A stretch of DNA of 54,001 nt, filler included, from Sluysia triapertura (taxonomy: Eukaryota): the NCBI GenBank assembly GCA_046118255.1. It is 4 parts of 4 records of this genome, joined end to end, with 100 filler letters (N's around TTAATTAATTAA, not from the genome) between each part and the next. Parts side by side here need not be neighbours in the genome. Positions count along the whole stretch, not along the records: positions 14,698 to 27,383 come from JBJNIA010090235.1; 3 more parts are not named here. One strand, given 5' to 3'. This document shows positions 14,698 through 27,383 of this stretch, one piece after another; the stretch's first letter is position 1; each line of letters starts with the position of its first letter. The translations under genes and the position numbers were made by a program. The notes beneath the pieces were generated by a model, which was not told where the DNA came from, made no database searches, and saw only the letters and a program-made list of their open reading frames with translations.

Positions 14698-14763
<66 letters not shown>
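14698..14763. repeat. (AAT)n microsatellite at contig start
   Basis: Direct reading. Confidence 0.95.
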
Positions 14764-14767
<4 letters not shown>

Positions 14768-15507
14768 TTTATCACATCGAATAACATATAGCAATAATTA
14801 TTCTTTCTTTTTTATTTTTGCCAAATTAAACTGAACTTGTAAAACCAAATTGTTAAAGTAATAATAATTATTATTATTTTCTTTTACCAAAATAAATCGA
14901 ACTAAATAAATTTTGCGGTGTTAACTTGTGTTTGATTTTCTAAATTATTGGATGTGATTTTATGATTCAGCTGAAACTATAGAACAAGAATCTTCTAGAA
15001 TATATTCTAGAAAATTCTTTTTCTTTTTTAGAAAATTAACTTTGATTTTTAAAGATTTTAAATAGTTGTGATGACAACCTACACTAACTAACTTCCACAG
15101 TAGAGACTACTTTGATTATCCAAAATTATATAAACTATCATATCTTGAAGTTCAAAATTCGTAAAGTTCGAAATACTTACAATAATTTGAATATTATTAT
15201 AACAATAAATTATTAAGAAATTAGCAAAGATAAGGTATAAAACGTAATAGATGCAATAAATAGAGATTTTAAATTTATCTAAAAGAAAGTAATAATGTGC
15301 CTAATTTTTATTAAAATACGTAAAATAAAAGATAAAATTATTGCAATATATTTAAAGCCATGATAGTAAGACAATAAATTTTTACAAATTTAGGAAATTT
15401 TTTAGTACAAATGCCAAAAAACATTTAATTTATATGCTTGACTAATAAAAATATTTTGAACTTTACTATTTGAAAGCTATTACACCTAAAAGTGGGACAA
15501 TTTAGGC

Positions 15508-15722
15508 CAGTGTTTTTCAAAATGGGTCCAAGAGCCTTTACTTTGATTAATAGAAATTCAGAAAATTATTCATAAAAACATTTTCAAGGTTAATACACAA
15601 ATCAATTAACTTTCAATATTTAGTTTAACGAGATTTAATGATTTCGTTAGTGATCAAAGAACAAAGAAGCTCATATGACTTTTAAGACTTTATGAATGAT
15701 CAGAAAAGTTTAATAATAACTG
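15508..15722. mobile_element. hAT-type MITE (215 bp)
   Basis: CAGTGTTTTTCAAA...AAAAGTTTAATAATAACTG termini with a perfect 8-bp TSD ATTTAGGC. Confidence 0.85.
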
Positions 15723-17214
15723 ATTTAGGCATTCAATAAATGCTACAATCAATGTGAATCTAAAATTTCGAAATGTATCAATTCAAATCAAGTATTTAGT
15801 AACAACAATAATAATAATAAATAATTACAGAAGATAAAATATTGCCGTTTAAAATGGTATTGATAATTTTTCGTTTTAGAATTTTTAGAACAAATGTTTA
15901 GAATAAATGTTTTCGATAAATATTTAATTTTGATTTTAATTTATTTGATTCCCAAAAATATATTCTAAAAGTTACTAACCAGTAATTCAGACAGATTTTG
16001 AATTTGCTTTTTATACAATCAATAACCAATAAAACGTATTGTAAAGTAATTAATTTTTTATTTTAATGTGAAAAATACTAGTTTTGCACTTTTTTGTTTA
16101 TAAACAAATTAACGAATTCAAAAATTAATGAATATTAAGGAGTGATGGATTTATAATCCCATCTCTCATTATCACTACTATAGTTATGGGGTTTTCCTGT
16201 CATAACCTTTACTAGAATAGAATGAAGTGATCAACACTCATATACATGACTTGCTAAGTTATGAAGCAAATTAAAATCGAATCTCTACACTTTGTATACC
16301 CGGTAGTTATATTAAAGAAATGTATTAATATTCTGCGACATTAAACAGATAATAGTAAATGACTTTTTGAATGGTTATTAACAAATGAAAGCATTACTTA
16401 AATAGAATTTTCATATCCAAATACTAAAACATGAAGATCAGAATTTCAAAAATGTTAGAGGTAATAAAATTATATTAAAAGATGCATAATGGTCAACTAT
16501 AAGTACTGAATTAATTAATATGGAATATAGTAAAAGCATGGATATTCTAAAAATAAAGTCAACTTTTTTCACTGAAGACTGAAAGTGAAAATAAACTTGC
16601 ACATTTATTTCAATAGAAAATATGGAATTAGTATGAAATATTTTCAAAAACATTTTGCCAATTTAAAATATTACAACTTTATTAAGTTTGATAACATTTT
16701 ATATTTTTGAAGATGAGATTCGTTTTTCATGTGAAAGATATAATTACACAAAAATACAATAATGTAACCAGAATATTGCCATTAACTTTAAATAAAATTG
16801 TTAAAATATTTCTAAAATTTTGCATTTTACGTAATAAATATAGGTCACTTCTTAACAATACCATAATGAAATGTTATTTCACAATTAAACAAAAAAAACC
16901 TTTGGTATTAATATTAATTTTGATTATATTTCCGTGAATAAAATCTACAAAGTTTTTCTAGAATATATTCAGTCAAGCAAAGATTGTTTTGAAGCTGTAG
17001 TTTATAGTTTAGGTAACAAAAAATTTTATTTTCCAATTCAAACACTGAATGAATTTTTTCATATTTAAATTTTCACTTTTTAGCATTTAAATAAAGCTTA
17101 CATAATAACATGTTATTTAATTAAATATATAAAACCTTAAAATAACCTCAAGTAACCTTATAATTTTTCTATTTTTAATATAATCCTTAATTTGGATATT
17201 CAAAATTTATCATT

Positions 17215-19221
17215 TTACAAACTAACCGGTTTATCTTCTTCATCATTTGAATTGCAATTTTCACTGAAATCCAACATGATTCTCTTTTTTAAAGGTAAGT
17301 CCAACTTTGAAGGTTGTTCACGACGATTTACATTATTTGACTTTAATAAATTCGAATCTACATTGATATTATTAGTATATATCAAAGAGTTTGGATTTGA
17401 ATTGTTCATGATTACATTCGAGCTTATATNNNNNNNNNNNNNNNNNNNNNNNNNNNNNNNNNNNNNNNNNNNNNNNNNNNNNNNNNNNNNNNNNNNNNNN
17501 NNNNNNNNNNNNNNNNNNNNNNNNNNNNNNNNNNNNNNNNNNNNNNNNNNNNNNNNNNNNNNNNNNNNNNNNNNNNNNNNNCTTTTGGATTGGACATCAA
17601 GATAATTTTGCATTAAATCAACTACAAGTGATTCAGCCTTTTGTCGAATACTATATTTATTATTAGTATTTAGTCTAACATATAAATTGTCACTTGTCTT
17701 AGTAACAGTAGAAGGATTTTGTTTGTCTACATCAGGACTTTCAAAATCTATTAAGGATTTATTTTTCATCGATGAATTTGCATTTCTATTTGACGTTGTA
17801 GATGCTTTAGTGCTTGTTAAATGATTGTTAATATTATGCTCAGATAAGTTGGATAGAGATTTTTTAAAATGCTGATTGACCATATCGTCGTTACTAAAAC
17901 TTGAATTTGAATTGTTGTTTGATAGCAAAATAGATGCTTCTTTGGAATCTCGTAATATTTGATGCGTAGGATCTAAAATATTTTTGTTTGTTGAATTTAC
18001 TGATTTTAACAATAAATTTGCATTTGTACAATTATTGGTATTATGCTGGTTAATAGAATGTTGTTGAGAATTTATTATGATATCCCAATCTCTAGGTAAT
18101 GAAGGTGGTATAGTTTTGCGCTGCATTGAAATATCGTTAATCGGAGACTGAATTATTTTAGAATCTGTGTGTTGCTGAGACGGTTTTATAATTAATGATT
18201 GTGCTGATGGCGCCGCAGATGACGTAGGAGATGATGATGAAACTATAAGTTTATTGGTCCTTCGATTGACGTTTGGCAATGATGTATCAGAATCAATTTC
18301 AGATTGTGATTTAAAAGATCTTAATAATTAATATAAAATTTAAAATAAACGTAAATATTGTTTTTAAAAAATTAAAACAAACCTATCAGACATATTTTCA
18401 CTGTATGAGCTTTTGTCTAACAAATTCCATAGAGGTATGTTAGAAGTAGGAGCTTTTATAAATACATTTGATTTATCATTATTTGAATTTTTAATAGTGG
18501 AACATTCCAATATAACATTAGATAACTGATTAGAATTATTTTGATTTTGATTGATAAGCATGAAACTAGAATTATTTGGATTTTGGTGCTTTTGTAATGA
18601 ACTAATATACTGGTTTATTTCTTCAGATGTCAAGCTATTTTTGTTCTGCGAATTTAAACGACTTAAAGCTTCCATAACATTCACATTATTCATTGTGAAT
18701 ATTGTTGGATTTGATTGATTTAAAGAAGTTGATGGTACTGAAGTATTTATAGCAATAGCAGGGACATTTGTAGTTTGATTAGATAACAGTACTTGCGAAT
18801 TTAAGGGTACAGAACTAATTGATTCCTTTGAAACGTCTGAGGCATTAGTTGTTGAATTTTGCTTTTTATCGTATTGCAAGCAAATAGCTTGTAACATACT
18901 TGGTATGGTAGATTCATTAGTATTGAAAATTCCCAATTGTTGATTACGATCAATCATTGTTGGTTGAGTCTGACTAACTTGAACTGATGGAGTGGATCGA
19001 TTTATAAAAAGCTGCGGTTGTCGTATCATTGCAGCAAATTGCTTTACTAATTCAGGTTGGATCACATTAGAATTTAATTGATATGATGAATTAGACCTCC
19101 CAGGTTGTTGCTGTTGAGTAACTACTAAATTCTGATTGATAGCTATAGGTGGTCGATATTGCTGCTGCGAATTCGTAGTACCATTCTCCGTAAAAATAGA
19201 AATGTTATTCTTAGGTTGCAT
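17215..19221 (-). CDS. Two-exon gene for a low-complexity Q/N/S-rich, probably disordered protein (~650 aa including the N gap); exons 19221-18383 and 18319-17215
   Basis: The 285-aa and 354-aa ORFs join in frame through a 63-nt GT-AG intron (18382-18320): ...MSDR|SFKSQSEIDSDTSLPNVNRR. C-terminal LDLPLKKR motif. No domain recognised; start codon unverified; frame across the N gap is assumed. Confidence 0.75.
17430..17581. other. Scaffolding gap (152 N) inside a coding exon
   Basis: N run without the linker motif. Confidence 0.95.
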
Positions 19222-19744
19222 AATTTCTTCGAAATACTTTATAACATTAATACAATTAAAAAATAATCAATGACTTTATGACAGTCGTACTTTGAATTGA
19301 ATATTTTTTAAACTATGATTGGTTATCGAAAGACAGAGTAAAAATAAACAGTGTGCTTATATGCATACAAAACAGTATTTCATAAAGTATGTCACTCTGT
19401 CACGTGATTTTAATTCTAATGTTTTATTTTTGTAGACAATTTATTTAAAATTCCTAAGTAGGTGTCTCTAATAACATTCTAATGTAATTAAATAATATTT
19501 ATATTATATTTCAATACAATTATAACCTCTTTTCATGTTTTACTTATTAAAAGATATTTGTAATTGTTTTAATAACTCATTTTGTTTAGTCAATAAATAA
19601 GTTCTATTTTTAGAAACGCCATACAATGAATTAATATAATTTTATTGATAATACAATATATTAGTCTGTGATTAATAGCTTAATAATCTACTACTAAAAA
19701 TTAATATAAAATTTAAATATAATTTGTCATTTAAGTAGATATTT
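19222..19744. promoter_or_regulatory. Putative bidirectional promoter between the divergent Q/N-rich gene and BAF60
   Basis: About 520 bp separate two divergently oriented ATGs; positional inference only. Confidence 0.45.
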
Positions 19745-21367
19745 ATGATGTATTCGAATTTTCAAAGAAATATGAATTCACATAATAGATCTATTCAATC
19801 AAGAATAAACCCTCAAACCTCTGTAATGAATAATAGTAGACGAATTCAAAGTATTCCTCCAAGTAATATGTCACAAAACACTTCTAGACCCACTATGTAA
19901 TTTTTTTTATAATTTTATTCTACTTTTAGAAAGCGAAAAAGAAAAATGGGTGATAGATTATTACCCAAAAAAATAAGACTATTAATTCCTGAATCTGAAT
20001 CATATATGCAAATGTTAGAGTTAGAAAAACAATTAGATCAAGTATTGATACGTCGAAAATTAAGTGTTCAAGAAGAATTAAAAAAACCTTGCAAAGTATA
20101 ATTAATTTTTTTACATAATTATTTTAATAGATAAAGAAAAAGCTTCGCTTAATTTTAAGTACTACATTAAACACGGGATCTGCTAGTGATTCAGGGCAAT
20201 CAATGAATCATATTGGACCTGGTTGGGAATTAAGAGTTGAAGGTCGATTAATTGATGAAGTAATTTAATGTAATTGTTAAATTTTAGTACTTAGAGTTCA
20301 ACAAATGATCTTAAAACTCGTAGAAAGTTTTCTACTTATTTTAAATCTTTAGTAATTGAACTAGACAAAGATTTGTATGGACCAGATAATCATTTAGTTG
20401 AAGTATGTTTTACACTAATAATTTACATTTTTATAGTGGCATAGAAATGCTAACACTCCGGAAACCGATGGATTTCAAGTAAAAAGACCGGGAAACACAA
20501 ATGTTAAATGCAAATTGTTTTTGATGCTTGATCATCGGCCTCCGCAGTATAAATTAGAACCGCATTTAGCTAGAGTTTTGGGTATTCATACTGATACTAG
20601 AGCACAAATAATTTACGCTCTTTGGAACTATATAAAAACTCAAAAGTATTTTTTTAATATTTAATTTATATTAATAGATTACAGGATTCGCATGAACGTG
20701 ATTATATTAATTGTGATCAGTATCTAGAACAAATTTTTCAAGCAAAAAGAATAAAATTTGCTGAAATACCAAACAGGTTAACACCATTGTTGTTGCCACC
20801 AGATCCTATTATTATTAATCATGTCATTCAAGTTGATGGTGAAGAACCAAAACAGATATCTTGTTATGATATTGATGTTGAATTGGTTATTTTCTATTTT
20901 TAAATGAAAATGATAATCAATTTTATTAATTTCTAAATGGCATTCTATTTCGTGATTTTTTTAATTTTGATGTTTTTTTTTCATATTAGGAGTTGAATAT
21001 TTATCTAAAAGTTTTACATTATATACTATCGCTTTGTGCAGATTTCATTTTGATTTTGATTTTATACAATATTTTTAAAGTTAACCCGTAGCACTCAGTA
21101 ATTAAGCTGGGATGCAATGAGTTAAACATTTCCTTCACTTAAAAATCAAAAGTGTTAAATTCTAAAAAATTCTTTTATTATTTGTATGGATAAGTAATGA
21201 AATTAATTTAATTACACTAATTTAATTGTTTTCATTTTTAATGTTAATGACTTGTAATATTATATTTTTACAGTGTTTCTATTTAGGATGATAACTACAA
21301 AACGATGTTACAAAATTACGCACAAAATACTGTATATCCTCAAGAAATTGCAAATTTGGAATGTAAA
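19745..21367 (+). CDS. SMARCD: SWI/SNF complex subunit SMARCD/BAF60 (SWIB domain), 3'-incomplete; exons 19745-19896, 19930-20095, 20131-20259, 20295-20402, 20437-20645, 20678-20885, 21287-21367
   Basis: Manual splicing at GT-AG junctions gives one open frame with BAF60 hallmark peptides: [120 protein letters not shown]. No C-terminal exons recognised before the contig end at 27383. Confidence 0.97.
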
Positions 21368-21449
21368 GTAAGATATGTTAAATATTAATTTCTATTTATA
21401 AAAACAATTATTTGACACTGTCAGTTTAGGGATGTTGAAGGTTTATTAA

Positions 21450-23176
21450 CCCATTCGCTGCCAAGCCTAAATTGTATGAAGTTATTTTCTGTGTTATAAA
21501 ATATTTTTTGTCTTGTTAATGTTATCAAATACCTTTTGTTTTTCTTGTTGACACTTATTTATACTTATCTGGAATCGTTCGTTCACTCGTAGATGGAAGT
21601 GCAAAATTTGATTGCTTAGATTCTAAACACTTAAAAACGTTAAAGTTGAGTTGTCTGAACTCTAAATACCTTTAATAAAAAACGCTGAATTTACACAAAA
21701 TTGTTAACGTCGTAAATAAAATAGTTTATACAGAATACAAAATTCTGTAATTACCTTATCAAATATTGTTCTAAAACCGAATCAATCAAATATCGTTAAT
21801 AGTTAATCAGTTAAGTTAATAAATTTTACAATTGAATACCTTTTTTCTTCTTCGGCTTGAATACTTTTTCGGAATTGATTAATGACTTTCGGCTAAAATG
21901 TCTATTTATATCCATTTGGTGATGTTGTATGATTGCCTATAACTGTTGTAATTACTTTTTAAATAAATTATTATTCCGTGAAATGCGTTTGTAATTACTC
22001 TTTTCCATTAAATTATTTTCTAATTACTTATTTAATTGAAAATCCATTAAGTAAATATTTCTTTCTTCAATTCTTTAGGTATTAATTACTTTTCTTTAAA
22101 ATCCCTTAGGTAATTAACTATTTTTATTTTTAAAATTTTTGTAGTATCATTAAGTAATTAATTTTTTATTTAGTACTTCAATTTTATATGTAAAATAATT
22201 AATTTAAATTGGAAATGGAGGTTAAACTAAATTTGAAATGAGTTTTTATGTTATTTTTAATTTTATTTTATATATTTTATTTTATTTACATCTGCTTTGA
22301 GTGTTATTTATCTAAGTACACATTGGTTGCCAATAAAAGCAAGAATAGAATTTAAAATCATGACAATAATTTACAAACGCTTACATTACGGAAGTCCTGA
22401 ATATCTTTTGGAAATGAAGATGAATATTTCATTGAGACAATAATAATCTATACAGAATTCACAGTGATAACAAGCTAGGTGATAGGTTGTATACTGTTTA
22501 TGTCTCAAAAATATACAACCAGTTACCAGAGAATGTCAATTTGCTGGAAGATAATGAAATATTTAAGAAAAATGAAAAGTTCTTTCTGTTTCAGAAATAC
22601 TATGGTGAATGATTTACCATAAGCGCTTTTGAGTACTTCAGCAGTAGGTATGAGCGCAATATAAATTAATATATTATATTAAATAATCATTTACATGTAT
22701 AAAAAATCAAACACGAATATTGGCAATAGGAAGACTATATCTTTTTTTTATTTGCACACGTTTAAGCAAACAAACAAATCATTAATCACACAAATAGATG
22801 AAAGTATAATAGTACTAAAAACGAGACACTTTTCTGTAAATTCGTAAAGGATGGTTATTAACTGCTGACGATTACTTAGATTCTATTTCGTTTCAGAGAT
22901 AACGGGATCATGTAATATTGAACACTTTGACTCTGAGTTTATCTGCAACATCTCTCAAGAATAAGCACTGTAATTTTGTAGAGTCAGAAGTACCTATCAA
23001 TAAATTATTAGTTGGGAAATAAACAACAAATTAATAAATAAAGTAGAATTTTTGTAAAAACAAATTATTTGTAGCTTTTTTCAAGTTTTTACACTTGTAT
23101 ATTTATATAAAACGTTTGCCAGCTCCACAATATATTGAAAGTATCATGAGTATATTCGTGGTTGGCAGCGAATGAG
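21450..23176. mobile_element. Non-autonomous piggyBac-type element in BAF60 intron 7, with a nested LINE fragment
   Basis: TTAA-CCCATTCGCTGCCAA at the left and TTGGCAGCGAATGAG at the right (14 of 15); the right TTAA is missing. Confidence 0.65.
22319..22680 (+). mobile_element. L2/CR1-group LINE 3' fragment (same family as 5450-5815)
   Basis: HWLPIKARIEFKIMTII; L2-type tail TAAGCGCTTTTGAG...GAGCGCAATATAAAT. Confidence 0.88.
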
Positions 23177-24938
23177 CCGAGTGATTATCATTGGGTAGTT
23201 TTGGAATTGTATTATTTATGAATTCGGAGGTATGGTGGTAAGAGTTTGTATTAACAAGTTGTAATGGAAATATGTTATGTTTAGAATATTATTGTCAGCA
23301 TGTTTGATCATTACAGTCTTGTCAAAATTAAACAAATCTCTTAAAACTTATTAACTATTACTGGAGTGATATAACTGTTAGAAATCCTTAAATTTACTGT
23401 TTCTCTTTTATTGTATTCATTTTTTGGTATAGTAATGATATTTAAAACTTTAATTCTACTTTAGTTTTCATCTCATTAATCATTATTTCATTTAAATGGA
23501 TTTTAGATTTTATCCTCCAGCTCAAGTTTATTTCAACCTGAATGTCGGGAATTTTATGCTTTAACTGATCATGATTATAATTAAAGTTTACTTTTTTACA
23601 GTTTTTATACTGATTACCATTTCTATGTTTTGAGCGCCATATTTTGCAAAAATATTACCTTAAAAATTAATAAATGAGAAATAAAAGAAAAGTATTTAAA
23701 GTTTTAATAAAAAATATTTCGAACAGATCTGTCAGGTCATCACGTTTCATGATTTTATAAACAAGAACGGATTTTGTTTTGCCGCCAGATGTGAATGTAT
23801 CTTTATCTGACAAATGTCCTAAATTATGTTTTAGGTATTCTGTTATACGATTAGTTTCTAATAGATGAGTAAATAAACTTTCTGACATTTCTTTTTCATA
23901 ATTTACTTTGAATTTGAATGCAGGATTAAATTTGTATTGATAATATTCATCTTTGAATATCTTTTGCAAGCAGTTGTGAAAACAGCTTTCAATTTCTAAT
24001 GTCACTTCTGCTTTTTTTCTAAGACTTAATTAACGGTAAAATAATTTTTGGACAGGGTCCGGTTACAATAAAGGACTTCCATCGTATTGTGGGCGTTCAT
24101 GTAAATTTAAGTTAATAATAAAATTTGACTTTAACCCTAAAAATGAATGCCTAAGTATTATTTATTAAAAAGTTCTAAATCTGATGACTTAACAATCTTA
24201 AATTAGTTTATTGAATTCTTCACTTAAGTAGAGTAATAATCCAAATTATTGTTATTAAAAATTTCAAAATTTAAAATTTACAAGTTTAGATTATATAGAT
24301 TAAAAATAAGAAAAATAAAGTCTTTCAATTAAAACCACAAGGGGCTTTAATTGTTTTTATAATAAAATAAGTTCGAATATAATTTGTCCCTCTATATATC
24401 GGTGAAACTTAATATACTTTTAAAAATGAATTAAAATGGGAATAATTTAAATAAATTAGTATTTCCTTAACAGAAATAACTTACGAAAAGCATGGAACTG
24501 TCCACAGATATTGAATAATAATTTTCCTTTTTGTTCATGTGCAACGGAAAACGAATATAGTTGTTAGGATTTTATTGTTTAATAAATTAGGTTGAATAAA
24601 CGTAATGTAAAGGTTCGAGGGCTTGATTATGTATAAGAAAAAGCAGTAGTGATGAAGTGCAAAATCTAAAAGTATAAGTAATCTAAAATTGTGCTGGAAT
24701 AATGCGTCAACTTTTGTGATGCTATTAAACTTGATCATGTGTGAACTAAGCGTATTCTCGTTAAAGAAAGACAACTTGTTGTACGAAAACTCAATTTCTA
24801 TTTTATGCTTACTCTTTACCGGTTTACTAACGAAATTATTATATTTGATTTTTTGGAAGATGTGAGTATACGCGATGTAGGTGTATAGTTTAAAATCTTT
24901 CAAAGCTTTATTGCCATTAAGCTCGGAACCCTTGAGAC

Positions 24939-26150
24939 TTATGAAGTTTTTGATTTCAACGTAATTTTTTTATCTTTATCTTGAATACTGAAGTTTTCAT
25001 TTGCATTAAAAAAACATAATTTAAATCTTTTAAGAAAAACATTTATTAACGTTCTAAAACTTTTTAAATATATATATTTGTTCCATGGTTTCGAGTAATT
25101 TCGCATTTCTTCGTTCTTGAATCCATTTTCATCGTACAGTAAATCGAGGCATCTGAGATTATAATATACAATATTATTATATAAAGAAATAAAAGAATTC
25201 AAATTGAATTTACAATTTAACAAGTACATACCTCCTTGACGATTGACCATCAGTCTGCTATTTCTGGTATACGACATGATTGCAAGCTCGTGCTCAAAAT
25301 TGATTATTTTCTGCTTAATACTAATCACATGCATCGTGTTCTGCTTCACGTTAATCACATTGTTTGTATCCTGCTTGACACTAAATATTAGGTTCACGTC
25401 GTACTTCAAACTATCTACATCATCTGCATACTTGTTGACACTAAATACATGGTTCACGTCGTACTTGAAACTATTTACATCATCTGCATATTTGTTGACG
25501 CAAAATACATGGTTCATGTCGTACTTCAAACTATTCACATCATTTGCACACTTGTTGAGACTAAATACATGGTTCACATCATGTTTCGGACTATTTACAT
25601 CGTACCCTCTTTGTTTTTCGCTATTTACATTAATTACATTCATCTTTGCACTGGATATAACGATCACCTTGTGCTCGAAATTACTCACATCGTTCACTTT
25701 TGATTTCGCACTAATTATGTTGGTGGCGTCACGCTCGAGACCAATTTTATCATATATTATCGACTGATTTTTAATCTTAATGATTGCATTGTGGTTCATA
25801 CTAATTATATCATACGTTCTTTGCTTGATCCTAAACATGATGATCATAACGTGCTTTACTCTTAGTTTTCGACGTATGGATAGTTGATCTAATTGTTTTT
25901 TTAATTCTAACATTTGCATATATGATTCAGGTTCGAGAATTAATAGAATCATTTTTTCTGGTAATAATCTATCACACATTTTTCCCGTTGGCTTTATAGA
26001 GGGTCTAGGAGTGTTTCGTGACATGTTACTTCGAAGAACAATTTGAATCTGTATAGTGTTATTCATTACAGAAGTTTGAGAGTTTAATCTTGCTTGAATA
26101 GGTCTATTACATGAATTCATATTTCTGTGAAAATTCGCATTCTTCCTCAT
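24939..26150 (-). CDS. Chimeric 403-aa ORF: processed copy of the BAF60 N-terminus (~98 aa) + decapeptide repeat array + unrelated tail
   Basis: The first ~98 codons align without indels to spliced exons 1-2 of the BAF60 gene; intron 1 is precisely absent; the ORF is uninterrupted for 1212 nt in very AT-rich DNA. Expression unknown. Confidence 0.7.
   Translation of the reverse strand: MRKNANFHRNMNSCNRPIQARLNSQTSVMNNTIQIQIVLRSNMSRNTPRPSIKPTGKMCDRLLPEKMILLILEPESYMQMLELKKQLDQLSIRRKLRVKHVMIIMFRIKQRTYDIISMNHNAIIKIKNQSIIYDKIGLERDATNIISAKSKVNDVSNFEHKVIVISSAKMNVINVNSEKQRGYDVNSPKHDVNHVFSLNKCANDVNSLKYDMNHVFCVNKYADDVNSFKYDVNHVFSVNKYADDVDSLKYDVNLIFSVKQDTNNVINVKQNTMHVISIKQKIINFEHELAIMSYTRNSRLMVNRQGGMYLLNCKFNLNSFISLYNNIVYYNLRCLDLLYDENGFKNEEMRNYSKPWNKYIYLKSFRTLINVFLKRFKLCFFNANENFSIQDKDKKITLKSKTS
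25261..25860 (-). repeat. Coding minisatellite, 30-nt unit (~20 copies) with a 60-nt higher-order dimer in the core
   Basis: CTA(A/T)..ACAT-like words recur every 30 nt; the core translates as (DVNS[LF]KYDVNHVFSVNKYAD)n. Confidence 0.9.
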
Positions 26151-27383
26151 TATCTACTTATATGTCATATTATTTAATATATTTTGTTTTTATTAATTTT
26201 TTGTTATGACTGTCTAATTTTTATTTTATATTCATGGTGACTATAATATTAATTAATGATTTTTATTTTAACAATGCTTGTCCGCTTGTATTGATTTTTC
26301 AATGGCTGATTTGATTTACATAGAGATAATTATTGTGATTGCCGGATTATCTCTATTGTATATGCATCGTCAACACACATGCGGGATCATACTTGTCAGC
26401 AACAAAATTACAACAAAATGCTAAACATGCGATCATTGTTTGTAGTAGAGGCACACTGTATTAACCAGTTAAAATTCGCTCTATCATTTATTCTCTTCCA
26501 AATCTTTAGTGTCTGCCCAATCAGATTTGTTGTTGCTGTGTGAATATAGAGATTGTCTGATTGGGTGACGTAATTTACACCTGTGTTGTGGTGTTTTCAA
26601 ATGTGTCTGATTGTTAACTTTTGATCACGTGTGTGATTCTAATTCAGACATCTGGCTGACATATTGATTTTTACTATATTTTGACTAACATTGACATTAT
26701 TTGTGAAATTTGATTTTATGTTGTGACATATAGTGTCAATGAACTAAAAGGCAACCAGATGTATAATGATCACGATGATGACGATAATGACGATATCGAT
26801 ACCGTTAATGAAAATGATGATTATTAAGTGACACAGGTAGAGCTATTATGTAGATTCCACTAAGCTATTGAGTTTCAATAGTCTCAAATTACAGTAAACT
26901 TTGCATGTTATTATTGGTAATAATAATATTAATAATAATAATAACAATAATAATAATACTGATAATAATAATAAGAATAATAACAGTAATAATGGTGATA
27001 ATAAGAAATAAAAATAAAATACATAAACCTTGATGTCTTTAAAAAAACATGATCTTTTTCTAATCTTGAACTCTTATTCTAACATATAAAGTAATACAAA
27101 ATATAAAAGGAATAATGTGGATAGGAGACTGTGGAGTAGTAATTGGAAATAGCATGTTAAAATTAGTTTATAAAAATTTGTTGAAAAGGTTAAAGGTTGG
27201 AAACAAGATTTATGCATTGAATTTAATAGTTGTGAATGTTTGTTGACTGGTTGAAGTTTTGAAATGCTTGTTAAGAAGATTGAAGTTAATTTGATTTTTT
27301 GTGATTGTTGCGAAATAATTTTGTATATATTATGGTGTTATTAAAATGATTAAAGATGATGGGTATGATTGTGTGAAGTGGAT

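Follow-up and report, generated by a model that had tools for sequence, protein, structure and literature searches.

The 54,001-nucleotide stretch of Sluysia triapertura DNA considered here (assembly GCA_046118255.1; hereafter the window) consists of four parts of four genome records joined by filler. One of these, the piece at positions 14698-27383 (JBJNIA010090235.1), has a G+C content of 19-35% and carries a multi-exon BAF60/SMARCD gene on its plus strand. On the minus strand of the same piece, 26204-25858 is a copy of the start of this gene, which lies at 19745 (+); it takes in ~50 nt from upstream of the gene, exon 1 and the greater part of exon 2. The copy lacks the 33-nt intron 1 to the base and is joined in frame to an array of decapeptide repeats. 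The locus appears to belong to a retroposed family that is multi-copy and lineage-specific, and it is probably best explained as a chimeric retro-derived unit in which a spliced BAF60 5' part became joined in frame to a pre-existing repeat sequence, was amplified, and has had its frame kept open.

The 5' end of the parental gene (19693-20095, plus strand) comprises a putative 5' untranslated region, exon 1 (19745-19896), intron 1 (19897-19929; 33 nt, GT..AG) and exon 2 (19930-20095), whose donor lies between 20095 and 20096 and opens an intron of 35 nt. Later exons are detected up to 21369, and one of them encodes a SWIB domain (PF02201, E 8e-10; Pfam). In the minus-strand copy, an upstream-derived part at 26151-26204, a putative 5' untranslated region, pairs with parent 19693-19741 with two small indels; its local alignment score of 18 compares with a shuffle mean of 11.5 (standard deviation 1.4, maximum 17.5), and the homology begins 49-54 nt 5' of the ATG. 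An exon-1-derived coding part (25996-26150) and an exon-2-derived coding part (25858-25995) follow. Alignment and an inverted-repeat scan pair parent 19719-19896 with copy 26173-25996 over 178 nt at 83% identity and parent 19927-20067 with copy 25998-25858 over 141 nt at 85%, with the 33 nt of intron 1 missing between copy positions 25996 and 25995. No alignment above chance was obtained farther upstream or downstream of the copied part. The original prediction had described a copy of ~55 nt of upstream sequence plus exons 1 and 2, intron 1 removed exactly, with neither indel nor stop in the coding part, and all of this held up: the 296 copied coding nucleotides carry 49 substitutions, 0 indels and 0 stops.

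Both parental ATG codons are altered in the copy (to AGG and AAG), and a new in-frame ATG stands one codon upstream of the lost one, at 26150. From it runs an open reading frame (ORF) of 403 codons (24939-26150, minus strand), which is continuous over both junctions and ends at 24939. Residues 55-116, within which the exon-2-derived part has its similarity, match residues 125-186 of human SMARCD1 (E 1.2e-3). A Pfam search of the 403 codons returned 0 families, hence no SWIB domain, in support of the predicted in-frame fusion without SWIB. The host 5' exons lie in sense orientation at the 5' end of the chimeric unit.

The decapeptide-repeat array (25287-25856, minus strand) consists of 19 units of 30 nt, which encode ORF residues 99-288 with the pattern K-x-x-V-N-x-V-x-S-x. 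The central ~3.5 repeats form 60-nt higher-order units of 83-90% identity, and the outer 30-nt units are 40-60% identical yet in frame with the decapeptide pattern, second codon positions being the most conserved. No other copy of the repeat or of the tail that follows it is present in the piece. Where the original prediction had the frame continue through repeats and a tail of ~100 amino acids, the in-frame repeat stands; the tail proved to hold a 79-nt intron and to lack coding periodicity. The segment in question (25231-25153, minus strand), which the 403-codon ORF reads through, is a real intron, because a paralogous contig in sequencing run X1 (see below) skips exactly 25153-25231 (CT..AC ends on the plus strand) and because the segment has GT..AG ends, a GTATGT donor and 15% G+C. 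As 79 is not a multiple of three, its removal shifts the frame and yields a 335-residue product ending soon after the junction.

In the unspliced reading, the ORF tail (24939-25152, minus strand) comprises 70 codons and a stop; it is open in that frame (P 4e-4 for no stop by shuffle). In the 210 nt downstream of the intron, which are AT-rich, no 3-base periodicity is seen, and the protein probably does not truly end with the tail as read. A second open frame of 145 codons (24535-24969, minus strand; TGA at 24537-24535) would join the main frame if the A7 run at 24965-24971 differed by one base, giving 538 codons; alternatively, a possible 326-nt GT..AG intron (25231-24906) would give a product of 429 residues. 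A 3-base compositional signature is common to the repeat and 24950-24535: G+C by codon position is 0.38/0.19/0.47 in the repeat and 0.28/0.22/0.42 in the second frame, rich at the third position (GC3) and poor at the second.

No homologue of the repeat or tail was found among 1.84 billion proteins, a full HMMER scan having returned only two BAF60 N-termini; the whole ORF and the second frame gave no protein match by word index, and the tail, the second frame and the neighbouring ORFs gave no meaningful Pfam or PDB match. The repeat-rich product is, by these sequence comparisons, an orphan. A single-sequence AlphaFold model of the product had a mean predicted local distance difference test score (pLDDT) of 34 and is unusable. 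Derivation of the tail (..EEMRNYSKPW.., 25041-25152, minus strand) from the BAF60 C-terminus (..ERHAEFYEEPW..) was considered and rejected, with a BLASTP E of 0.12 in a single comparison; nor did tblastn with full-length BAF60 proteins find the tail as a BAF60 C-terminus.

For comparison of introns, the BAF60 loci of the cestode Hymenolepis diminuta and the trematode Heterobilharzia americana were fetched. Both species have a phase-2 intron at the same site (AA/gt..ag/T in H. diminuta), six codons before the conserved M/L-[AG]-D-R-L-L, as in the parent. A same-site, same-phase intron in a cestode and a trematode means that intron 1 is ancestral and was lost by the copy, and the converse, a gain of the intron by the parent, is excluded by its presence in both relatives, a check that had been proposed at the outset. 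The exact intron loss, the start of homology ~50 nt 5' of the ATG and its end inside exon 2 make a spliced RNA the simplest template for the BAF60 segment, and the RNA-derived origin first suggested is well supported by the loss of an ancestral intron to the base. Homology stops at parent 20059-20067, inside exon 2 and 28-36 nt before its donor, which excludes ordinary exon-to-exon splicing onto the partner. Near this breakpoint lies a cryptic donor GT at parent 20064 (TTAA/GTGTTC), and use of this donor and reverse-transcriptase template switching are each possible. A short similarity between parental TTAAGTGTTCAAGAA and the repeat-unit boundary TTTAGTGTCAACAAG is recorded as an observation only. 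The BAF60 3' end was not copied; a 13-nt A-rich stretch is all that follows the TGA at 24535.

The copy lies 3.6 kb beyond the last detectable parental exon and is antisense to the parent. Full-length flatworm BAF60 queries located parental exons only up to ~residue 357 of 452, and the final ~95 codons were not found with them on either strand of the piece, 21370-27383 included; the parental gene either continues past the end of the piece or is truncated here. Because it lies 3.6 kb past the last detected exon and the later exons are not in the piece, the copy probably sits antisense within a long, repeat-filled parental intron. Its position beside or inside its parent is not easily due to chance. 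The database protein nearest the parent is a 261-residue fragment (UniParc UPI00060B228B, here P0001), ~91% identical in the SWIB exon, followed by matches of 52-57% identity, among them Heterobilharzia, Hymenolepis and Mesocestoides. Together with the very small introns, these matches point to an animal resembling flatworms. Exact look-up of the 403-codon ORF and of P0001 in public assemblies recorded nothing.

Evidence that the chimera exists in many copies comes from run X1, the only public run containing this stretch, which is kept as contigs (736 Mb in 6.25 million) with its library type unrecorded. A single-copy contig covering 23135-24515 (1381 nt, depth 18) has 0 differences to the window, and this contig and the overall size of the run suggest that X1 is genomic DNA. 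Over 24455-26030 the summed depth is 500-2100, or 20-100 times single-copy, with flanking single-copy contigs at 18-27. It stands at 833 over the exon-2-derived part (25834-26030) and falls to 78 across 26031-26227; a contig identical to the window in that interval has a depth of 16. At the 3' side, the single-copy contig ends ~20 nt past the TGA at 24535, with depth of 880-1275 beyond its end, so that the repeated unit ends there; its edge (24486-24534, minus strand) consists of the A-rich stretch after the TGA and then single-copy DNA. Many positions vary from the window in 2-10 high-depth contigs. The contig without the 79-nt intron has an identity of 97% towards the repeat and 87% towards the tail, values that assign it to a paralogue. 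If X1 is DNA, there would be tens of copies that include the exon-2-derived part, at least one of them processed, and fewer that reach the 5' end.

These observations can be assembled into the following course of events. Copying of a spliced BAF60 mRNA would have begun within exon 2 and run to the 5' end of the message or close to it, and the copied part would have been attached in frame at the 5' side of a sequence that already existed, comprising the decapeptide-repeat ORF, the 79-nt intron and a coding-like segment ending at 24535. The join could have been made by reverse-transcriptase template switching or by way of the cryptic exon-2 donor. The chimera would then have multiplied to tens of copies, the one in the window retaining the full 5' part. 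The frame as a whole has been kept open, so that the family would be, or would recently have been, protein-coding; a coding family is plausible but unproven. A bolder form of this proposal would make the window copy the founding full-length member of a young retroposing coding family, born within the BAF60 intron by a switch onto the locally abundant spliced transcript, with its helix still docking onto SWI/SNF as a repeat-bearing modulator of chromatin remodelling; this is speculative and improbable.

The original prediction held retention of the 5' end to be the reverse of what known retrocopies do, which does not stand, since first-exon chimeras of LINE-1 and SVA are documented (bioRxiv 10.1101/2025.02.02.635956; PMC6139936). 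Among human LINE-1 insertions, 17 carry mRNA first exons at their 5' end, e.g., those of MAP3K13, FHIT, PALLD and CREM (bioRxiv 10.1101/2025.02.02.635956), so 5'-end retention is a known outcome. They and SVA_F1 are the nearest known analogues of the present unit, which resembles the LINE-1 chimeras in that processed first exons, in sense orientation, head a retroposed sequence. However, the LINE-1 chimeras have a LINE-1 body, six of them end at splice donors, and they bear the full hallmarks of target-primed reverse transcription (target-site duplication, endonuclease motif and poly(A)), features that the S. triapertura unit does not display. SVA_F1 (MAST2 exon 1 joined to SVA) reached 84 copies and the chimpanzee element pt_SVA_D6 (STK40 exon 1 joined to SVA) 94 (PMC6139936); in both, as here, host 5' exon sequence in sense orientation takes the place of, or lengthens, the 5' end of a non-autonomous tandem-repeat unit, and amplification to tens of copies, apparent in the present case, followed. 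In those elements the host exon ends exactly at a splice donor, whereas here homology ends short of the donor by 28-36 nt, two exons with the intron removed are involved, the partner is no recognised retroelement and carries a long in-frame ORF, and neither a poly(A) tail nor a target-site duplication was found at the copy.

Template-switch chimeras join transcripts at non-exon borders, tripartite examples being known from Magnaporthe (PMC2104539). The present copy is like template-switch retrogenes (U6-L1 type; Magnaporthe) in that transcripts with no relation to each other meet head to tail at a non-exon border, and in that copying of the 5' partner extends as far as its 5' end. In contrast, the usual 5' partner of such retrogenes is a small or highly expressed non-coding RNA, rather than a protein-coding mRNA joined in frame, and their product is usually a dead pseudogene. 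The architecture and the apparent amplification are already known in kind, while the junction inside an exon, the long in-frame ORF and the orphan partner differ. The locus would provide a clean non-mammalian example of the processed 5' exons of a host gene being captured in frame onto other sequence and then amplified. A translated family would show how new multi-copy proteins can arise from the N-terminus of a housekeeping chromatin gene and a repeat array; an untranslated one would be an invertebrate counterpart of SVA_F1. A copy beside or inside its own parent is unusual and could bear on where template switches happen.

Several points weigh against an amplified, retro-derived coding unit. 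Neither a clear poly(A) tail nor a target-site duplication was detected at the copy, the best flank match for the latter being 10 nt with one mismatch, a quality reached in 82% of shuffles. A dispersed retrocopy would not be expected to land within a few kilobases of its parent. In the 3' partner neither a reverse transcriptase nor a Pfam domain was detected, and it lacks homologues in the protein collections searched. GC3 is 0.42-0.47 in the repeat and second frame and 0.15-0.27 in host genes here, and this foreign-looking codon usage of 24535-25856 (minus strand) hints at a mobile or recently arisen origin. Finally, copy number rests on one run, and if X1 were RNA its depth would reflect strong expression and splicing. 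Whether X1 is DNA or RNA, a silent and unique pseudogene is not what the locus represents.

The alternative that survives best, though we regard it as doubtful, is that a non-coding, SVA-like composite retroelement with an internal 30-nt variable-number repeat captured the BAF60 5' exons and spread, the long ORF being a by-product of a stop-free unit and an inherited frame. Depth is multi-copy but lower at the 5' extremity, a pattern like that of 5' truncation; three of the six frames of the repeat are open (with plus-strand ORFs at 25243-25767 and 25449-25703), codon composition differs from that of host genes, the BAF60 part is unconstrained, homologues are lacking, and SVA_F1 and pt_SVA_D6 are direct precedents (PMC6139936). 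This view does not readily accommodate the strongly diverged outer repeat units that hold both frame and decapeptide pattern, the 145 further open codons with 3-base periodicity at 24969-24535, the 70 open codons after the intron (P 4e-4), or the freedom of the BAF60-derived coding part from indels. The last feature stands against 2 indels in the 54 upstream nucleotides, a contrast that points toward maintenance of the frame. Random placement of 38 substitutions would create no stop with a probability of ~0.08, so that the open frame is a weak argument in the same direction. The 18 family variants listed in two frames (7 synonymous, 11 non-synonymous, 0 stops) form a split that is not significant and is compatible with mild constraint.

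In its original form, the prediction was of a single young chimeric gene whose BAF60 N-terminal helices serve as a SWI/SNF decoy or as a repurposed chromatin protein. In its favour are the intact in-frame fusion of 403 codons, a new ATG in place of the lost ones, and a core block that is still kept, in which residues 55-98, from the N-terminal helix region, match human SMARCD1 125-170. Against uniqueness stands the depth in run X1, which indicates a family of tens of copies. The pattern of substitution is equally unhelpful to a decoy. The ratio of non-synonymous to synonymous substitution rates (dN/dS) between copy and parent, another check proposed with the prediction, is 0.82 (1.5 in the exon-1 part, 0.46 in the exon-2 part), a value that argues against BAF60-type constraint even though the frame is still open, and differences are spread over the codon positions as 19/15/15. 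When P0001 and other flatworm proteins are used as outgroups, ~20 of the replacements that can be polarised took place in the lineage of the copy, against 1 in that of the parent; in exon 2, 12 of 13 are copy-specific relative to P0001. Among the changes, KRKRK has become KPTGK, and conserved IR and PES residues have been replaced. The BAF60-derived part has evolved without BAF60-type constraint, and with nearly all replacements on the copy lineage, KRKRK and conserved residues lost, and no SWIB domain or C-terminal region, the copy is not a BAF60/SMARCD member in function. A BAF60-like decoy role in SWI/SNF is accordingly unlikely, and a unique gene devoted to it we hold to be quite improbable.

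An equally poor prospect is DNA-level inverted duplication of the BAF60 5' region beside a minisatellite, with no RNA intermediate, followed by exact genomic loss of intron 1. A copy only ~4 kb from its parent and inverted is typical of local DNA rearrangement, and the missing poly(A) tail and target-site duplication would be as expected. However, exact loss of a single intron is itself usually mediated by cDNA, the homology reaches no farther than ~50 nt 5' of the ATG, as expected of a transcript, a processed paralogue is seen for the remainder of the unit too, and intron gain in the parent is excluded. That the assembly wrongly joined BAF60-like reads to a repeat array is very improbable: among the contigs listed for run X1 none spans the junction at 25858, but the copy is 15-17% diverged from the parent and so is not a mis-joined parental read, window-identical contigs cover 26118-26246 and 25503-25644, and the frame is continuous over both junctions. 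The amplified, retro-derived chimera is preferred to all of these.

Other features of the piece lie outside the chimeric unit. Within the presumed long BAF60 intron, 22288-23100 is an interspersed repeat of very high abundance, with a summed depth of ~1.2 million in run X1 where single-copy sequence has ~20, and an ORF on its plus strand ends in a LINE-type motif, HWLPIKARIEFKI..YKRL. Between this repeat and the chimeric unit, single-copy DNA at 23667-24005 (minus strand) contains an ORF of 112 codons with no significant Pfam match. On the other side of the parental gene, 17215-19221 (minus strand) holds two long ORFs of 354 and 285 codons, rich in N, Q and S and split by an N gap at 17430-17581; neither has a Pfam family, and together they are probably one low-complexity gene arranged head to head with BAF60. 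Scans of the piece for Rfam families and tRNAs returned nothing, and a bacterial promoter/terminator scan was uninformative. More high-depth repeats occur 5' of the copy in run X1, at 26228-26818 (depth 350-1,100) and 27016-27383 (9,000-225,000), and microsatellites of the (TAA)n / (ATT)n type lie at both ends of the piece (14699-14770 and 26900-27030).

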